From the NCBI RefSeq assembly GCF_001194135.2, contig NC_068991.1, positions 44,465,317 through 44,529,316 of the forward strand: a DNA stretch of 64,000 bases, read 5' to 3'. The first letter of the stretch is position 1. Every line of letters begins with the position of its first letter. A model generated the notes under the pieces. That model searched no databases and had not been told where the DNA came from. It saw nothing but the letters and a program-made list of their open reading frames with translations. The DNA comes from Octopus bimaculoides. Taxonomy: Eukaryota. Made by a program: the position numbers and the translations under genes. Below are positions 71-60,052 of this stretch, one piece after another.

Positions 71-1178
71 CAATATTAACAACAGAGAATGAAGAAGTTG
101 ACAATCTAAATAACTACATAATCCAGAAATTTCTAGGTGAGACATATACTCTGAGGAGTATTGGTTCCGTTGCAGAAGATCAACAATCCACATGGCGAGC
201 TGGCAGAATTGTTAGCACGTCAGGCGAAATGCTTAGCGGTATTTCATCTGCCGCTACATTCTGAGTTCAAATTCCGTCGAGGTCGACTTAGCCTTTCATC
301 CTTTCAGGGTCGATTAAATAAGTACCAGTTATGCACTGGGGTCGATGTAATCGACTTAATCCCTTTCTCTGTCCTTGTTTGTCCCCTCTATGTTTAGCCC
401 CCTTGTGGGCAATAAAGAAATAAGAAGATCAACAATCTACACTCTATTGTCCTGAATTTCTGAATTCTCTTAATATAAGTGGCATGCCACCTCACATTAT
501 CAAATTAAAAACGGGTGTTCCTATAATGTTGCTAAGAAACTTAGATCAGAGGCACTGCAATGACACACGTTATAGTGTGTTATCGGTGTCAGATGATTTG
601 TTCATTGCAAGTAAAATAACTGGTGTTGATGCAGGATGCACACTTTTGATTCCCTGCATTATTCTGCAATCATCTGATACCGATTTGCCCTTTACTTTGA
701 AAAGACACCAATTTCGAGTGAGACCTGCTTTCGCGATATCTATAAGCAAAAGTCAAGGACAAAGCCTTTCTAAGTGTGGTATCTACGTGCCTGTGTCTGT
801 ATTTACTCATGGCCAGTTATATGTCGCTCTTAGTAGAGTTGGGGATCCAGTGAATCTTAAAATATTTGTTGATCAAAAAAAATTTACTAGATCAGGAACA
901 AGTAGATGTTATAATGAAGATGTAAGGAGACTTACATGTAATGTTGTCTACATGGAAATAGTGTAAATATTGATATGTTGCCTATGTAAAAAGTACAGAT
1001 TTGCTTGATATTTTCTTTGTTATTTTATTACTGATTTTGTAAAGTATTTGCATAAATAAATATATGTAAATATATTATCAAATATCTTTTGTGTATTTCT
1101 CAAACAATAGTTGAATTAAATTGAAATGTTATTCTAAACATAGCATTGTTTTTTCCTTATTGACGGGTCATGTACTAG
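70..1178 (+). mobile_element. Helitron 3' portion: Pif1-like helicase C-terminus (70-188 joined to 438-966) and candidate CTAG terminus
   Basis: AILTTENEEVDNLN...YCPEFLNSLNISGMPPHIIKLKTGVPIMLLRNL...FAISISKSQGQSL...FTHGQLYVALSRV are Pif1/RepHel motifs. Removing the SINE and one TSD copy restores a 215-aa open frame. gacgggtcatgtaCTAG at 1162-1178 resembles a Helitron 3' end. Confidence 0.88.
194..425 (+). mobile_element. Full-length tRNA-related SINE inserted in the Helitron helicase
   Basis: Pol III-like A/B boxes (ggcagaattgttag, gttcaaattc). 15-bp TSD AGAAGATCAACAATC at 174-188 and 423-437. Related copies at 14053 and 41120. Confidence 0.9.
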
Positions 1179-16847: not shown

Positions 16848-17388
16848 ATGCCAGGATGCAGTACCAGGCAGTGGCTCTCATGGCTTCTAATTTTAACTGA
16901 TTGGAAGTGTTATCATGTACATTGTTTTGTCTTGGTATAAAAATGGGCTACAGAAAATATTCTGCTCAATGACACAGATTTGCCTGTCAGTTGTTTGACC
17001 TTAACTAGTTGAGCATGTCCCATAGTGACTGACAATATGTGCATTTCTGATCATGAGCAGAAGTAGTGGAGGAGCATCATAGCCATGTGTTGAGAGGAAT
17101 TCTTTGGGATTTGAATAATTCACCTCTGGAAACATGGATGTTTTGTTCATCATCCTTAAACAAACCTTATTGAGGGACCTTTTGAGTGGGGTGGGCTTCT
17201 CAACCTGAAGAAAATTCTAACTGGGCCCCGCCTACAAGGTCATGTGTTGCTTATCTTGTCACACACATATGGTTGTGATGCATGTGCCTGGTGTGCTCTT
17301 ATCAGATGGGTAGTCAAGATGGGTATACTGGGCTTCGTATGATTGTACTCCAGTATCACTTTGATGGCATGCACCTGCTCTCTCACTC
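16848..17388 (+). mobile_element. Non-coding TAA-flanked dispersed repeat, copy 2
   Basis: Homologous to copy 1; (TAA)n on both sides. Confidence 0.8.
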
Positions 17389-17419
17389 AATAATAATAAT
17401 AATAATAATAATAATAATT

Positions 17420-18308
17420 TTGACTGATAAATGGCATGGAAAACCTCTCAATGGCAAATACCCAAAGAAAGCGAATAATGCAGATGTTGACAAAGCCCTT
17501 ACCCATCAATGGCTAATGGCCTCTGGCTTGAAATCAGAAACAGAGTGGTTTATCATAGCAGCACAAGATCAATGCTTACCTACAAGGAACTACCAGGCCA
17601 ACATATCAAAGAACAGCAGCTCCCCATTCTGTTGTATATGCCAACAACAAAATGAGACCATCGATCATGTTGTCTCCATGTGCAGTCTGCTTGCGTCTAC
17701 AGAGTATCTCAACAGGCATGATTGAGCTGCACAATATATTCACTGGGTAATATGCAAAAGCATGGACTTGCCCTATGATAAAAATTGGTGGGAACACAAA
17801 CCACCCCTGTATTTGAAAATGATCACATCGCACTGCTCTGGAACTTCACCATTCAAACTGACAGAAAGATAGACGAAAATAGGTCAGACATCATACTGAA
17901 AGACTTCAGACAAAAATCATGCCTCCTCATTGATATGACTGTCCAAATCGATATNNNNNNNNNNNNNNNNNNNNNNNNNNNNNNNNNNNNNNNNNNNNNN
18001 NNNNNNNNNNNNNNNNNNNNNNNNNNNNNNNNNNNNNNNNNNNNNNNNNNNNNNNNNNNNNNNNNNNNNNNNNNNNNNNNNNNNNNNNNNNNNCCTACGC
18101 AAAATACTTTCTATTTAATCTCAAATTTTAAAACAAATACATAATTTTCTTATGGTTTCTTAAACATTCTCTAAAACAACACTATGTACAAAACCAAATA
18201 TATGGCACCCTAGGCATAACACCAGCATGAACTTCTAACTTGTTGTCTCTTGAGGTCTCTGGGTGAGACTAGGAGCCAACTTGTACAAATGTAAAGCAAA
18301 AGTCAAAC

Positions 18309-20492: not shown

Positions 20493-22620
20493 CATCATCA
20501 TCATCATCATCATCATCATTTAACGTCCACTTTCCATGCAAGCATGGGTTGGATGATTTGAGTGGGGACTGGTGAACCAGATGGCTACACCAGATGGCTA
20601 CACCAGATGGCTACACCAGATGGCTACACCAGATGGCTACACCAGATGGCTACACCAGATGGCTACACCAGACTCCAATCTGATCTGGCAGNNNNNNNNN
20701 NACCAGATGGCTACACCAGATGGCTACACCAGACTCCAATCTGATCTGGCAGAGTTTCTACAGCTGGATGCCCTTCCTAATGCCAACCATTCCGAGAGTG
20801 TAGTGGGTGCTTTTTATGTGCCACTGGCATGGGGACCAGTCCAGCAGTACTGGCAATGGCCACGCTCAAATGGTGTTTTTTACGTGTCACCTGCACAGGA
20901 GTGAGTCCAGTGTTTTGTTCACATGCCACTGGCACAATTGCCAGTAAGGCGAAGCTGGAAACGATCGTACTCAAATGGTGTTTTTTACGTGCCACTGGCA
21001 CGGAAGCAAGACCGCTGCTCTGGCAGTGATCCCACTCGGATGGTACTGTTAGTGCTCCACTGGCATGGGTGCCAGTCATCGAATTTGATTCAGTTTCGAT
21101 CGATCTCACTTGCTCCAACAGGTCTTTGCAAGCTGAGTTTAGTGTCCAAAGAAGGAAAGGTACGCATATGTGGGCTGGCTACACCCCTGATAAAGGCCAC
21201 GGATTATGGTCTCACTTGTCTTGCCGGGTTTTCTCACACACACCGTATTTCCAAAGGTCTCGGTCACTAGTCATTGCCTTGGTGAGGCCTAATGTTTGAA
21301 GGTCGTACTTCACCACCTCATCCCAGATCTTCCTGGGTCTATCTCTTCCGCAGGTACCCTCAACTGCTAGGCAGTGGCACTTTTTCACACAGCTATCCTC
21401 ATCCATTCTCACCATATGACCATATCAGCACAATCATCTCTCTTGCACACAACTGATGCTTCTTAGGTTCAACTTTTCTCTCAAGATACTTACACTCTGT
21501 CGAGTATGCACACTGACATTACACATCCATCGGAGCATACTGGCTTCATTCCTTGCAAGCTTACGCATGTCCTCAGCAGTCACGGCCCATGTTTCACTGC
21601 CATGTAGCATAGCTGTTTGTACACATGCATCATACAGTCTGCCTTTTACTCTGAATGAGAGGCTCTTTGGCACCAGCAGAGGTAAGAGCTCTCTGAACTT
21701 TGCCCAGGCTATTCTTATTCTAGCAACTACACTTTCTGCGCACCCTCCCCCACTACTAATTTGGTCACCTAGATAGCGGAAGCTATCAACTACTTCTAGT
21801 TTTTCTTCCTGGAATGTGACAGAAGTTGTTTTCTGCACATTTTCAGTGTTTATTGCTCCTGAGCATCTGCCACATACAAAAATTATCTTGCTAGTCAGCC
21901 TTCCTTTGATATTGCTGCACTTCTTATGTGTCCATAGCTTACACTGGGTACATCTTATAGAGTTTCTACCTATGCCTTTTCTACAGATCGAACAGGGCCA
22001 TCTACCTAAAGGGGTTTGTGTTTTGTATACATTTCTACTTATTAGGACTTTGGTTTTAGCTAGGTTGACTCTAAGGCCCTTCGATTCTAATCCTTGCTTC
22101 CACATCTGAAACTTCTCTAGTTCTGATAGTGACTCAGCAATTAGAACAAGGTCATCAGCATAGAGGAGCTCCCAGGGGCAACCTGTCTTGAATTCCTGTG
22201 TTATTGCCTGTAGGACTATGATGAATAAGAGGGGTCTGAGGACTGAACCTTGGTGGACCCTTCCTCTACCTGGAATTCTTCACTGTGCTCGTTGCCAACC
22301 CTCCTTACTGACAGCATCCCTGTACATGGCTCGCACAGCTCTCACTAACCATTTTATCCATAGTTTCCTCATTGACAACCAGATAAGAGAACGGGGGACC
22401 CTGTCAAAGGCTTTCTCCATGTCAACGAAAGCCAGGTACAGAGGTTTATCTTTGGCTAGGTATTTTTCCTGCAGCTGTCTTACCAGAAATATAGTATCAG
22501 TGATGCTTTTCCTTGACATAAACCCAAACTGCATCTCATCTAAGCTGACTCTCTCCCTAATTAGTTGGGCTATGACCCTCTCTGTGACCTTCATTACCTG
22601 GTCCAACAACTTGATACCTC
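20493..22620 (-). mobile_element. 5'-truncated RTE-clade LINE with (ATG)n tail
   Basis: LDQVMKVTERVIAQLIRERVSLDEMQFGFM...LYLAFVDMEKAFDRVPR, YADDL region, GLRVNLAKTKVL, FRYLGDQI, LHGSETW; ~700-bp 3' UTR; (CAT)n on + at 20493-20519. Confidence 0.93.
20577..20740. repeat. 13-bp tandem repeat CCAGATGGCTACA in the RTE 3' UTR
   Basis: 7 perfect units from 20577 to 20667, plus about 2 more after a 10-N gap. Confidence 0.92.

Positions 22621-24440: not shown

Positions 24441-24450
<10 letters not shown>
24265..24450 (-). mobile_element. SINE body/tail running into a (TA)n gap
   Basis: gactgcggccatgctggagcac...gaaccgctaagttatggggatgtaaacacaccagca...gacaaacacagacac is CpG-rich repeat-like sequence. 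The family call rests on recognition, not on a second copy in this window. Confidence 0.55.
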
Positions 24451-24499
<49 letters not shown>

Positions 24500-24903
24500 N
24501 NNNNNNNNNNNNNNNNNNNNNNNNNNNNNNNNNNNNNNNNNNNNNNNNNNNNNNNNNNNNNNNNNNNNNNNNNNNNNNNNNNNNNNNNNNNNNNNNNNNN
24601 NNNNNNNNNNNNNNNNNNNNNNNNNNNNNNNNNNNNNNNNNNNNNNNNNNNNNNNNNNNNNNNNNNNNNNNNNNNNNNNNNNNNNNNNNNNNNNNNNNNN
24701 NNNNNNNNNNNNNNNNNNNNNNNNNNNNNNNNNNNNNNNNNNNNNNNNNNNNNNNNNNNNNNNNNNNNNNNNNNNNNNNNNNNNNNNNNNNNNNNNNNNN
24801 NNNNNNNNNNNNNNNNNNNNNNNNNNNNNNNNNNNNNNNNNNNNNNNNNNNNNNNNNNNNNNNNNNNNNNNNNNNNNNNNNNNNNNNNNNNNNNNNNNNN
24901 NNN

Positions 24904-24943
<40 letters not shown>

Positions 24944-25039
24944 AGAAGAAAATGGAAGAAACATAACAGGAAGAAGTTGATTGCTTGTGCTAGTAAGCCA
25001 TTAATTTAATTAATTAATAAAGAAAAGTGGTAGTAATAG

Positions 25040-25095
25040 TACACTTATGATCATTTCTGTTTACCAGTTGTGTTGGTAGACATCATCAGAATGCA
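25040..25095 (-). ncRNA. Type I hammerhead ribozyme motif (left arm, decayed stem III)
   Basis: tgcatt-CTGATGA-tgtc tacca(acacaac)tggta aaca-GAAA-tgatca-TA-agtgta. Long stem II is intact; stem III carries two CpG-type transitions. Confidence 0.6.
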
Positions 25096-25438
25096 TCGTC
25101 ATATGTAGAGGTAAGAAGAGCGAAAGACATAGGGATCCATTGGTAATGGGAATAAAGACAAAGAATGGTGAGTCTTACATTATAGTAGATTTCATAGTTG
25201 ATAATGCTGCTGTCAAGTGGATGCAGGTGAAAAGTCTAGCCAGAATAAGCACGTGGAAAATATGCGCTTACTTAAACTTGGGACTACAGATCAAAATAAC
25301 CTCCATCCTGTATCTACTTTGAAACAAAATTATCAACTATGAAATGTACAATAATGTAAGACTCACCATTCTTTGTCTTTATTCCCATTACCAATGGATC
25401 CCTATGTCTTTCGCTCTTCTTAACTCTACATATGACTA

Positions 25439-25482
25439 TGCATTCTGATGATGTCTGGTAAACAGAAACAATCGTAAATGTA
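25439..25482 (+). ncRNA. Type I hammerhead ribozyme motif (right arm)
   Basis: tgcatt-CTGATGA-tgt(ctggtaa)aca-GAAAC-aatc-GTA-aatgta. Stem I is 6 bp (one GU), stem II 3 bp, stem III 2 bp; GUA cleavage triplet at 25474-25476. Confidence 0.7.
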
Positions 25483-26881
25483 CTATTATTACCACTTTTC
25501 TTTATTAATTAATTAAATTAATGGCTTACTAGTGCAAACGACCAACTTCTTTCTGTTATTTTTCCTCCATTTTCTTCTTGCATATAATTTAAACTACGGT
25601 TTACCTGCTGCTGCATACCTTTTACCAAGGACTGTACCTATGCAGCTAATCACTAGGAGCGCCTTTGGATTATATATATATNNNNNNNNNNNNNNNNNNN
25701 NNNNNNNNNNNNNNNNNNNNNNNNNNNNNNNNNNNNNNNNNNNNNNNNNNNNNNNNNNNNNNNNNNNNNNNNNNNNNNNNNNNNNNNNNNNNNNNNNNNN
25801 NNNNNNNNNNNNNNNNNNNNNNNNNNNNNNNNNNNNNNNNNNNNNNNNNNNNNNNNNNNNNNNNNNNNNNNNNNNNNNNNNNNNNNNNNNNNNNNNNNNN
25901 NNNNNNNNNNNNNNNNNNNNNNNNNNNNNNNNNNNNNNNNNNNNNNNNNNNNNNNNNNNNNNNNNNNNNNNNNNNNNNNNNNNNNNNNNNNNNNNNNNNN
26001 NNNNNNNNNNNNNNNNNNNNNNNNNNNNNNNNNNNNNNNNNNNNNNNNNNNNNNNNNNNNNNNNNNNNNNNNNNNNNNNNNNNNNNNNNNNNNNNNNNNN
26101 NNNNNNNNNNNNNNNNNNNNNNNNNNNNNNNNNNNNNNNNNNNNNNNNNNNNNNNNNNNNNNNNNNNNNNNNNNNNNNNNNNNNNNNNNNNNNNNNNNNN
26201 NNNNNNNNNNNNNNNNNNNNNNNNNNNNNNNNNNNNNNNNNNNNNNNNNNNNNNNNNNNNNNNNNNNNNNNNNNNNNNNNNNNNNNNNNNNNNNNNNNNN
26301 NNNNNNNNNNNNNNNNNNNNNNNNNNNNNNNNNNNNNNNNNNTTGGAATTAAAACAAGATAGGCATTTACTCATTCTGAACTTAGCATTACATTAAGTAA
26401 CTACTACTATAAAAATGGTTTATAACATAGGCATAGGCCCAAGATTTAAAAAGGAAAGGAATATGACAAGCTCATGGTATTTTACAAGAGCATTATTGTA
26501 ATGTAATATAAAGGAAATGAAATAATGTCAGGAAGAAACTTAATTTATCTATTTTTTATTTTTTATTTCATATTGTATTTAAATTAATTATAGTATCATT
26601 TCCAAATGGGGTAATCACTGATTTATTGGGCAAGAGTAACAATGATGTCTTAATGAATTGTCCACTAGTCCAATAGGGATTAAACTGTAGTGCATTTCTT
26701 TTTTCCTGAATACTGCATTATGTGTAACATTGGAACATTTCTTCATGTTTTCAAAATTAGTGCTTAAGCATTTATATATCAACATTTGAAATATACAAAA
26801 AGGAATCATTAATTAGTGTGTGATCATAGTAGGATTATGGCAGTGAGATTATGTGCACATGCAACTATATAAACACACACA

Positions 26882-54365: not shown

Positions 54366-55459
54366 TCAAGCAACAACTCCACTCTCTGGATAGAGTTCGA
54401 CAGTTTTCACTTCAGTTTGTATTTCTGTTCCTGATCCACTGGGAGAATCATCAGGAGATTCTTGTGTAATTTCGTCTTGTTTTTTACAACTCTCTTCATA
54501 TGATGGTGGTGGTGGCAAGGCTGACTGAGGCCTTGGTGGTCGATTTGCACTGAATTGTCTCCATGCTCTCTGTATGATTCTTGCTGCAAAGTGTTCTTTT
54601 TGTCTACGTAACGTTGAAGTAATAGGGTTATAATCCACTTTCTCCGCTGCTGGTTCTTCAGCAGCTGATTCATCTGCGGTTCCCAAATAATTCTTTGTCA
54701 AAGCTTGTAAAATATCTACACAGTGTACTTTTTCACCTTCACATATAGGAATGTCAAGTTTAACAAGCATAAAATGATTTGGTTTGGGTAACTGAAGAGG
54801 TTCTTCCAGGAAGTCTACAAAGTCTGACAGTTCACTGAGTGCAATATATTGGGTTGCTTTAGGATCGAATTTTTCCCACTTTTCATAATACATATCAAAG
54901 TCATCTGGAGTGAGACCTTGCTGCACATCTTCAGTGGCTTGGCTAAAGTTCTCGAGTATTACTGCAATGTACATGTTTATTACCACGAGAAAGCTTATAA
55001 CTAAATAAGTCACAAGGAACAGAACTGCCATACCATAACTTCCACAATTTCCGTTTGCATTTTTGTTTCCAAATATTTCCTTATTAGGATCACATTCTGG
55101 AGGTTCTCGCATAATTGCTGCTAAAACACCATCCCAACCTGCAGAAGTGGACATTTGGAATAGAAGAATCATACTCTGAATCAAAGTCTGGAAATTGAAA
55201 ACATCATCTATACCATTGAAAGCACCGACATCCATAAAGAAGGACATCCCAAACATAGAGTAGATGAACATGACCAAAAATAGAAGCAATCCAATATTGA
55301 AGAGAGCTGGTAAAGACACTGCTAAGGAGAATAGCAATGTACGGATACCTTTTGCTGATTTCACAAGACGAAGTACACGGCCAACACGGAAAACACGAAC
55401 AACACGCAATAATGTTGGCGATACGAAATATTGCTTAATAATATCAGATAAAGCAATAC
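54366..55459 (-). CDS. Nav1: Voltage-gated sodium channel alpha subunit, terminal coding exon (DIV S3-S6, pore loop, C-terminal domain)
   Basis: Acceptor ttcag at 55462-55460. Translation [44 protein letters not shown] (S4), [10 protein letters not shown] (DIV pore), [13 protein letters not shown] (S6), EF-hand-like region, IQ motif [16 protein letters not shown], ending SGVVA-stop. 1094 bp, in phase with the upstream exon. Confidence 0.98.
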
Positions 55460-56649: not shown

Positions 56650-59316
56650 CTGAATCCAGTATATAAAGAGAGAGACAGAGAAAGGTAAGGAGAGATAGAG
56701 TAGGTGAAGTAATAGAGAGGGAGAAATGGGATTTGTATAAAGGAAGGATTATGTGTATTTAAAGTAAGGGGCTATAAATAACCAAACACCTATTATATAT
56801 ATAGTCAAATATTTTGAATTTATACATAATAATCAAAATCTATAGGTCATATTAACTTCCCCCTGTGCAAAAGCACTTACTTCACTGAAAAACTTTTATT
56901 TAACTTAAGGACTTGATTGGATGTTTAAGCCAAAAATCTTGTTCATCAAAATACAGTTTAGGGAAAATTTTATTCATGATAATTGAAACAATTCAATAAG
57001 TTCATACTGATACCAAAAATAATTTTGATAACTAAACACAAACATTGGCAACAATGAAAATCATTGATTGATGCTTTAATGTAGCACCCCGGTGTTATTG
57101 GATATATTACTACAATTAGTGATTATATTATGATTGATTAACAAGTTGCTTTGATAGTTAATGTTTTGTTAGTTAATCTGTGAAAGTGTTACAGATTAGT
57201 TGCCATATTTTTGTTATCTGCTATATTACTGCAATTAGTTATTGAATTACCATACTTGTGTTTTCTCAGTAATATATAGGATGTATTACCTGGATATATT
57301 ATTGTGATTTAGTATGTGCGTTGATCTAGTTCACTGATGTAATATTCTGTAGTATTAGTATGGCTACAGAAAATATAAATTTCTTTATTCACTGTATCAA
57401 TATAGTTAGCTGGTGTGTTATGCTAAGTGTTTGAAATCAGTGCATTATGTTATCCAAGCTTAAAACATGGAGTTTTGAATTGACATCCTCTGTAGGAAGT
57501 TAGTGACCATTTGCTTGATATACAGGTTTGTAAGTTAGCATTTTTCTATACACATCTTATTCACTATTTAGAATTAGTATAAGCCATTGCCTGTAGTGAA
57601 CATAACTGTTGCTATTAGAAGTGAGTATGGTTGCTGCTAACAATTGTTTTACTTGAGTTAACTGATGGGTAAGCAAAATTGTTGTTTATTATATTATTGA
57701 TGTTAGCCAACATAACAGTTAAGTAAACGTTAACATAAATCATCAATTTCATATATTACTGTTGCTGTATGCCTGCAAACGCCACAACAGCTTGGAATGT
57801 TGTTGATCTTTTTAATTTGAAGTACTTTTTCCTGTACACAACACCATCATTGGGGGAGGGGGAACTGTCATGTTACTGTGATACCTAGAAAAAGAAGGAA
57901 TGCTGCACATCCTGTAAATACAACACTTTTAATATCATTCTGAATTGCAAACTGTACACAACTTGTTCATTAAGATATAACTCATTACAAAGAAAAAATG
58001 CTTTTGATCTAGCAGATTCAGTTCTTATTGATGAAAAATCCTAGTGAACTTTACTCAAATAAGCTTGTTAGTAATTAATCAAACAGTGAACTGAATATTT
58101 AATCCACCACAATTTATATGTCATTTTTCATTTGATTGCAGTAGTAAGAGTGTCTTGCATCTGTCAATGGTTAGGATTCTTAAGATGTAGATTATTATGG
58201 CTATTTCATGTCTAAATGAAGTCTTCCCAATTTTTTTAATGCAATCTTGTACACTTTTTGTGTTATTTCTTAATTCATCTGAGCAAGAAGAATCTAGTAA
58301 TAAACAAACCAACATTTGATACATATGGAATACCATGAGGCAGAAATCAGTTTGCTTATTTCTTATAGCAATATTTGCTAATATGTAGCATGGGAAACCT
58401 TTCATTAATACTTTTGTTTGTAGAGTGCAATCATTATAAACCATTTCAAAAGTATACTTTAGATGACATATTTGAGAAGTTCGTCAAAATGTACATCAAA
58501 TAGGTGATTTTTAGATATACTCAAAAGTTTTTTAAAGGTACAATTTCACCATTGCCTCCAAATAGGTAAATGCAAAGTTGCCTCATGAATAATACATTTT
58601 CTTTTTCAAATCTCCAATTTGAATTAAGAGATGCTATATCTGTGAGCTTCCTCCCCACACTCTCCCAATTATATACACACAAATGAAATACAATAATTAC
58701 TTCTATTGGTAAAGATAATTAAGGATACATCACTTTATCATGTGAATTTTGTGAAAACAAATATTTTTATCAGCAAATAGGAATCCTTCTTTTTTATAAG
58801 GTTCCTCTTTCATTAGATTATAAACTCTGTTATATTGCAACATCATGAAGAACAGTGTTTTATGACAAGGCATCTACTTCATCTACCAAGTTAGATACCA
58901 AAAACCCTGATTGTATTTCAGAGTCTAACTTCAAAGTATTTAATACAGCTAACATTTTTTAAAACTTACCATCCTAATTATTCAATCTTGTGTTTTGCAC
59001 TACAATCTTTTTTTTAAGATTTTAGTTATATAGCTATGCCAGCTTGATGCCCTTCCTAGTATGAAATTGGAGTAGCAAATATTTTCATTGAGGTAGTAAA
59101 GACAAATAGAAATATTTCTTGACAAGGCGTAAAATATATGAATTTGCAGTCTTGTTTTCTATAGCTCAATATCTACATATAATAGCCAGTATGATTGCTA
59201 TTCTGTCGAATAATATGAAATAAGTTTCAAAATAGTAATTAAACAACAGTGAAAGAATGGACACCCAGCCATAAAAAAATAAATAAAAACAATAATGGCA
59301 ATAAAACCCAACTTAC

Positions 59317-59587
59317 CCAAAATAGAAAGGACTACAACTACAAAATCAAATATATTCCAAGGTTCTTTGAAGTAATAAAAACGAAGACCCATAAGCTTCA
59401 TAACACATTCGCCTGTAAAAATTCCAATAAAAACTATATTTATGTATTTCAGGAAGTCCTGAAATGTTTGGCTCATATCATAATGTTCCATGGCCATGGT
59501 AATCATATTGAGCAGAATGATCATCATAATGGCAATATCAAATTTTTGACTTGTTGTCAAATGGAACATCCATTCAGCAACTTTGAA
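59317..59587 (-). CDS. Nav1: Nav alpha subunit exon, DIV S1-S3 (271 bp)
   Basis: Bounded by ttttgcag and G|gtaagt. Encodes FKVAEWMFHLTTSQKFDIAIMMIILLNMITMAMEHY...FKEPWNIFDFVVVVLSIL(G). Confidence 0.97.
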
Positions 59588-60052
59588 CTGCAAAAGAAGA
59601 AAAGAAAAGTTTTATAATAAATGAATATATATATTTATATATATATATATATATATNNNNNNNNNNNNNNNNNATATAAGCAAGTAAAATAATATGTCAC
59701 AGATTTAGAAATTACCTTTTGAGCTGCAAATTAACAATATGGAGATTTTACAGTAAAGAAGTTGAAGGATGATAAGTAAAATCCTAGCTGCTTTTATATT
59801 TTTCACAAGTAAACTAAATAAATAATATGGATTTCATTAACTTGGACAGTAAAACAGAAGCTGAAAATAGAAAAGGAGGTTGATCTGGATTAGTCATGGG
59901 TAACCTGCAGCCCATGAGATTTTCTGCATGACACACCTAACAAAAGATTCCCTTGAATTTTTTAGTAGTGCAGCCTGCCCAATGATGAGTCATGTCTCAT
60001 GTATCCCACTTCTTGATAAAGATGACTTATGTCTGATCTAGATCCTTTAGAG

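Follow-up and report, generated by a model that had tools for sequence, protein, structure and literature searches.

The window and the foldback

The window, by which we mean the whole 64-kb stretch of DNA that was analysed, is animal DNA, rich in AT and interrupted by many assembly gaps. At 54366-55409 (-) and 59198-59593 (-) it contains the terminal exons of a gene for a voltage-gated sodium channel, recognised by Ion_trans and an SCN5A-type IQ motif. The larger exon was closest, with 88% identity, to a cluster with Sepia pharaonis SCN2A and a Doryteuthis opalescens sodium channel; the other matches, from annelids, gastropods and arthropods, were at most 70% identical, and no match of at least 90% identity was present in the protein collection. 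These matches mark the window as DNA of a coleoid cephalopod. An open reading frame (ORF) at 484-966 (+), in which a Pif1 2B domain and the C-terminal part of a helicase were matched, is probably a fragment of a Helitron helicase. Another ORF, at 17282-17725 (+), follows a run of isoleucine codons and matched zf-RVT with 27.2 bits, just below the Pfam cut-off of 27.5; it is probably another retroelement fragment. Parts of tRNAs or SINEs were not detected in the window.

The feature of interest is a foldback of about 650 bases at 24936-25586, an inverted repeat whose arms of about 290 nt are 91% identical and carry one hammerhead ribozyme motif each. The initial annotation had assigned this element the span 25040-25482, which proved correct as the coordinates of the motifs but too small for the full inverted repeat. 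The left arm (24936-25227) has its hammerhead sense on the minus strand, with its 3' end outermost, on the left of the foldback; the right arm (25307-25586) has its hammerhead sense on the plus strand, with its 3' end outermost, on the right. The two sense strands diverge, facing outward, and the arms meet at their 5' ends, where a unique central loop of 79 nt (25228-25306) joins the two 5'-truncated arms. When the arms were compared, 25 mismatches (17 of them transitions) were counted in 280 aligned positions, together with one 12-nt indel, and the Jukes-Cantor distance between the arms was 0.095. The best-conserved part of the stem is a perfectly complementary block of 72 bp, in which 25112-25183 pairs with 25351-25422. 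The mismatches were also spread unevenly, with 13 of them within the outer 130 nt of each arm and the perfect block in the inner half of the stem. CpG content, gene conversion or chance could each account for this unevenness.

At its left end the foldback is directly abutted by a (TA)n tract (24904-24940) which, together with a TA run at 24450-24499 and the intervening gap (24500-24903), forms an unresolved TA microsatellite of about 490 bp. On the right side, the next (TA)n tract and a gap follow after 84 nt of unique, GC-richer sequence (25587-25670 (+), 44% GC). This segment may belong to the insertion, as a "tail" on one side only, or to the flanking host DNA. It holds an 8-bp inverted repeat, GCTGCATA ... 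TATGCAGC. Both ends of the foldback are flanked by TA or TATA, which as a target-site duplication is indistinguishable from the microsatellite. Across the window, 34 (TA)n tracts of at least 12 nt were counted, about one per 1.8 kb, and TA repeats lie alongside 9 of the 12 N gaps, so most of the gaps are unresolved TA microsatellites. Because TA tracts recur at such short intervals here, the (TA)n context of the foldback is weak evidence.

The foldback sits on an assembled island of 758 bp between gaps of 404 and 661 N. Such a position would suit an assembly chimera, in which two diverged copies of a dispersed hammerhead-bearing repeat had been joined in inverted orientation on a small contig, and a divergence of 9% between the arms is typical of dispersed copies. 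We nevertheless regard a chimera as very unlikely: the loop that joins the arms is unique sequence, both arms stop at the same position, and artefactual palindromes normally have identical arms.

The paired hammerhead motifs

Each arm was found to contain the core of a type I hammerhead, comprising C3-A9, G12-A14, A15.1-U16.1 and H17=A (CUGAUGA ... GAAA ... U-A), and the two motifs point outward, the left one on the minus strand and the right one on the plus strand, in agreement with the initial annotation. The cores are 356 bp apart. The left motif, which is the better-preserved copy, occupies 25040-25095 (-), with cleavage predicted 3' of A25046. Read along the minus strand, it consists of the 5' strand of stem I (25095-25090, TGCATT), the core CTGATGA (25089-25083), stem II (25082-25058), GAA (25057-25055), helix III (25054-25047), H17 (A25046) and the 3' strand of stem I (25045-25040, AGTGTA). 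Stem II of this copy, TGTCTACCA/TGGTAAACA, has 8 pairs with one C.A mismatch and closes on the 7-nt loop ACACAAC, which bears out the claim that a long stem II had been kept here; helix III is the perfect palindrome ATGATCAT.

The right motif, a degraded copy with an intact core, occupies 25439-25482 (+), and its cleavage is predicted 3' of A25476. Its parts are the 5' strand of stem I (25439-25444 (+), TGCATT), the core CTGATGA (25445-25451 (+)), stem II (25452-25464 (+), TGT/ACA with the loop CTGGTAA), GAA (25465-25467 (+)), helix III (25468-25475 (+), ACAATCGT), H17 (A25476 (+)) and the 3' strand of stem I (25477-25482 (+), AATGTA). Alignment of the arms confirmed a 12-nt deletion in stem II of this copy, which has brought helix II down to 3 bp. 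With helix I open, the three helices around the core measure 6 bp, 8 bp (with the one mismatch) and 2 bp plus a GAUC loop in the left copy, and 6, 3 and 2 bp in the right copy. The sole helix I difference between the arms, U.G versus U-A, is compatible with pairing, as a single instance (n = 1). In both arms, the distance from the predicted cleavage site to the outer end of the repeat is exactly 110 nt.

Minimal hammerheads of Penelope-like elements (PLEs) have been described by four features: their families covary, A9 is followed by an extra nucleotide, the G10.1-C11.1 pair is conserved, and helix III is palindromic (PMC4209133). The last of these is present at the locus, where helix III of the left copy is the 8-nt palindrome AUGAUCAU; in helix III of the right copy, ACAAUCGU, the palindrome has been lost. 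An unpaired nucleotide after A9 is absent, as the U that follows A9 can pair with the A before G12. The G10.1-C11.1 pair is likewise absent: both copies have a U10.1-A11.1 pair, as had been pointed out initially, and a G-C pair is located one step further in, at 10.2-11.2. G10.1 contributes to the A9/G10.1 metal site, and a U at this position should lower activity. A search with Infernal and the Rfam hammerhead models, which had been put forward as a check on the motif, did not recover any hammerhead family at any threshold; neither copy was matched at the gathering score or at E<=10 in stretches of 759, 81 and 66 nt.

The chance expectation was estimated by using a generic descriptor of the same kind as published RNAmotif descriptors (CUGANGA, helix II of at least 3 bp, GAAA, helix III of at least 2 bp, U, H, and helix I of at least 5 bp). 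When both strands of the 64 kb were searched, only the two foldback sites were matched, even when the helices were relaxed to 4/2/1 bp. In 300 dinucleotide shuffles of the window, the mean was 0.003 matches per window. Moreover, 60 Mb of first-order Markov sequence yielded 2 matches; in neither was helix I 6 bp or longer, helix III palindromic or helix II extended. Because the two motifs lie in the arms of one inverted repeat, they are not independent and count as a single event. The left copy beats the loose descriptor three times independently, by its 6-bp helix I, its 8-nt palindromic helix III and five extra pairs in helix II. The hammerhead architecture is real, and chance falls far short of explaining it at the scale of the window.

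At the scale of a genome, it might be argued that an unrelated inverted repeat, for instance a MITE or a foldback DNA transposon, contains by chance a hammerhead-like sequence that was never a ribozyme. The termini of the inverted repeat do adjoin TA, the pair at 10.1-11.1 is U-A and not G-C, no Rfam hammerhead model matched, and a rate of about 0.002 per 60 kb would bring the loose descriptor to the order of 100 chance matches in a genome assumed to be a few Gb in size. We consider this reading decidedly unlikely, given that the three extra features of the left copy were unseen in the 60-Mb simulation, and that the orientation of the motifs, their distance to the ends and their divergent arrangement fit PLE insertions. 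With its extra features, the left copy is unlikely to be a chance match even at genome scale.

Decay of the arms and predicted folds

CpG is very strongly depleted in the window, with an observed/expected ratio of 0.20, compared with 1.09 for GpC. Between the arms, helix III differs at three positions (TGATCA versus CAATCG), all of which are transitions at both CpGs of a putative CGATCG. CpG-type changes account for 6 of the 25 differences between the arms, and a second TG-versus-CA double difference was found at columns 238-239 of the aligned arms. Given so low a CpG ratio, TG/CA doubles are the expected signature of independent deamination of an ancestral CpG in the two arms. The ratio, the CpG-type differences and the second double make it plausible, as had been proposed, that both helix III sequences arose by CpG decay from GAAA-CGATCG-TA, which is a plausible ancestor as the parsimonious reconstruction; copies of the arm's family would then be expected to have the consensus GAAACGATCGTA. 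Selection on the ribozyme since duplication was considered as well; the 13 core positions are unchanged, but the probability of this at 9% divergence is about 0.3, and it is hence uninformative. In octopus, a Jukes-Cantor distance of 0.09 between a copy and its consensus has been calibrated to about 25 My. By extrapolation from this calibration, half of the arm-to-arm distance would put the insertion very roughly at 10-15 My.

Folding predictions were made for the present-day motifs, for a restored RNA and for the whole element. In both present-day monomers, pairing of the core nucleotides U4-U7 with the 3' half of helix III keeps the hammerhead from being the minimum-energy fold. For an RNA with restored CpGs (helix III ACGAUCGU) and an intact helix II, the predicted minimum of the homodimer was a double hammerhead in which helices I and II were formed, the cores were open and helix III comprised 8 bp. 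The predicted energy of this homodimer was -26.8 kcal/mol, compared with 2 x -10.6 kcal/mol for two monomers. These predictions are consistent with the suggestion that the restored ancestor could have worked as a dimer, and the predicted fold corresponds to the behaviour described for dimer-dependent hammerheads. The stability of a single arm was not unusual. The transcript of the whole element was predicted to fold into one hairpin (-408 kcal/mol, z = -47) with both arms buried, and a read-through RNA would, as anticipated in the initial annotation, enclose the motif in a predicted hairpin of about 290 bp.

A hairpin of such stability, with a perfect stem of 72 bp, might also be taken for a hairpin-RNA gene (a miRNA or siRNA precursor) in which the hammerhead is incidental, and a sub-threshold match to MIR2118 (RF01911) was obtained at 25107-25427 (+) with 42.5 bits and E 8.7e-7. 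A gene of this kind is highly improbable: MIR2118 is a plant family whose gathering score is 85, the locus lies in a cephalopod genome, and a 290-bp stem is unlike an animal pre-miRNA. The MIR2118 identity was itself rejected as a long-hairpin artefact, at half the gathering score of a plant family. That covariance models of simple hairpins match inverted repeats was a warning already given in the giant squid genome paper (PMC6962438), and the locus carries the same caution, in that inverted repeats yield false miRNA-family matches.

Origin of the foldback and comparison with known systems

No sense-strand ORF was found in the arms, and the AUGs within the core or beside it do not open one. 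An ORF with reverse transcriptase (RT) and GIY-YIG domains was found neither in the element nor, by Pfam scans of the flank ORFs, in about 5 kb of assembled flank. The only RT nearby, at 21215-22618 (-), is LINE-type (RVT_1 with a PHD/C1-like zinc finger), 5'-truncated and interrupted by one stop; having no GIY-YIG domain, it was rejected as a Penelope-type protein. Exact protein look-ups with the 34-aa and 60-aa ORFs and with the neighbouring 223-aa RT ORF found nothing on record. An antisense reading frame is open in both arms, over 80 codons at 25080-25319 (+) and 64 codons at 25508-25317 (-), with 44 shared residues. These frames of 80 and 64 residues had no homologue among 5.8 billion proteins, and the sharing of the frame is probably fortuitous.

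An element without an ORF, with symmetrical termini and with TA or TATA on both sides that could be a target-site duplication, might represent a dedicated non-autonomous foldback family with a hammerhead in each arm, that is, a retrozyme-like or MITE-like derivative of Penelope. Non-LTR retrozymes have indeed been reported to derive from the pLTRs of PLEs (bioRxiv 10.64898/2026.07.22.740005). Such a family is, in our judgement, unlikely. Apart from (TA)n matches, no further copy of an arm was found in the 64-kb window, where the hammerhead-bearing unit occurs as the inverted pair only and not as a direct repeat; the protein searches gave no second copy either, and metagenome DNA-pattern scans with the hammerhead and with a conserved segment of the arm came back empty. 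Known animal retrozymes are direct tandem repeats and not inverted ones (PMC7229834). Moreover, with the arms 9% apart and one of the two ribozymes disrupted, the motif shows no sign of having been under selection since duplication. The structure is accounted for no less well by a twin 5'-truncated insertion that happened once than by a dedicated family without an ORF. It is also quite improbable that the locus belongs to an undescribed ORF-less inverted-repeat family of cephalopods in which the U10.1-A11.1 hammerhead of each arm is still active as a dimer. If this were true, the element would be a mobile "foldback retrozyme" whose ribozyme is turned off by hairpin formation, and would present a tolerated natural variant at a position that is held nearly invariant.

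The explanation that we prefer, and to which we attach moderate probability, is that one retrotransposition in the genome of a coleoid cephalopod, either of a PLE itself or of an RNA mobilised by one, left the locus as its decayed relic. Coleoid genomes are rich in Penelope elements. The background on PLEs that had been cited for the locus was found to be correct, both for the minimal type I hammerheads, whose helix III is palindromic (PMC4209133), and for inverted 5'-truncated copies, which are common (PMC8557442). Insertions of PLEs are heavily 5'-truncated and often have an inverted truncated copy beside them; their hammerhead is located towards the 3' end, and they occur preferentially in microsatellites or AT-rich DNA (PMC8557442). 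The locus has this layout too: its copies are truncated and inverted, the hammerhead of each lies close to the 3' end, and the target is a microsatellite or AT-rich DNA, the TA context weighing little. In Schistosoma, dual min-HHRs that lie 100-700 bp apart on opposite strands have been attributed to truncated PLEs (PMC4209133); the spacing of 356 bp between the cores at the locus falls within this range. For the Anolis PLE PAc, it was reported that the enzyme cleaves and extends both DNA strands, with one internal RT start shared by the two, and that its targets are AT-rich; the RT start lies 111-118 nt into the ORF and the hammerhead cut at +26, which places the end of the insertion about 85-92 nt after the cut (PMC11167929).

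By analogy with these systems, a PLE enzyme would have cut an AT-rich target, and reverse transcription would have been primed by both DNA ends at one internal position, close to the 3' end of the element RNA. Both cDNAs would have run inward and stopped early, leaving two 5'-truncated copies head-to-head with their 3' ends outward, and in each copy the hammerhead of the element would be retained 110 nt before the 3' end. If both ends primed at one position of the RNA, the outcome would be exactly the arms that were observed, with identical 3' ends and joined, truncated 5' ends. In the source element, a short palindromic helix III, ancestrally ACGAUCGU, may have allowed two copies within tandem transcripts to pair as a double hammerhead. 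The motifs would now be fossils: the arms have drifted 9% apart, presumably in large part by CpG decay, most of the right helix II is lost, the right palindrome is broken, and read-through RNA would form the hairpin of about 290 bp. The ribozymes of the locus are probably inactive.

The head-to-head arrangement of truncated PLEs is already in the literature, and the locus adds no new system. As a fossil, it opens no new question alone, and its value lies in repeat annotation. It would add a cephalopod example to the known link between hammerheads and Penelope-like retroelements, and its symmetry, with arms that end 110 nt after the cut, fits the two-end priming at the same RNA site that was seen for a PLE enzyme in vitro. 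Moreover, it can be used as a seed for cephalopod PLE hammerheads that are missed by the Rfam models.

When compared with known systems, the locus shares with MITEs and foldback DNA transposons the long inverted arms, the small size, the lack of an ORF and the TA beside both ends; neither a transposase family nor a clear-cut target-site duplication came to light for it, and the window had no further copies. To our knowledge, hammerheads are not a feature of MITEs. Newt satellite 2 and its kin are tandemly repeated satellites in which a G10.1-C11.1 pair is present and the loops are conserved. With newt satellite 2 and other dimer-dependent hammerheads, the locus has in common a weak helix III and a palindromic tetraloop, and activity would be expected only as a dimer. 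Animal non-LTR retrozymes (PMC7229834) resemble the locus in being ORF-less, AT-rich units of about 300 nt with one type I hammerhead each, and a helix III of 2 bp with a tetraloop is found in invertebrate examples as it is here. These retrozymes, however, are direct tandem repeats with canonical loop-loop contacts that match the Rfam model Hammerhead_1, whereas the locus is an inverted pair without an Rfam match.

From the minimal hammerheads of PLEs (PMC4209133) the locus differs in its U10.1-A11.1 pair, with G-C at 10.2-11.2, in having no unpaired nucleotide after A9, and in the absence of an associated RT/GIY-YIG ORF. It differs from PLE insertions in that it consists of two truncated arms only, with no full-length copy, and its mechanism is one that we infer. 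A possible likeness to these insertions is a one-sided extension, of 84 nt at the locus, where it is maybe host DNA, compared with 30-40 nt. In other respects the likeness is plain. As in the minimal hammerheads of PLEs (PMC4209133), the motifs are of type I, with an open, short helix I and no tertiary motif between loops 1 and 2; helix II is long (8 bp in the left copy), the very short palindromic helix III would allow a double hammerhead, and two motifs lie a few hundred bp apart on opposite strands. As in the inverted copies of PLEs (PMC8557442) and in PAc (PMC11167929), the copies stand head-to-head with their 3' ends outward in an AT-rich or (TA)n target, and the distance from the hammerhead to the end, 110 nt at the locus, is similar to the approximately 85-92 nt of PAc.
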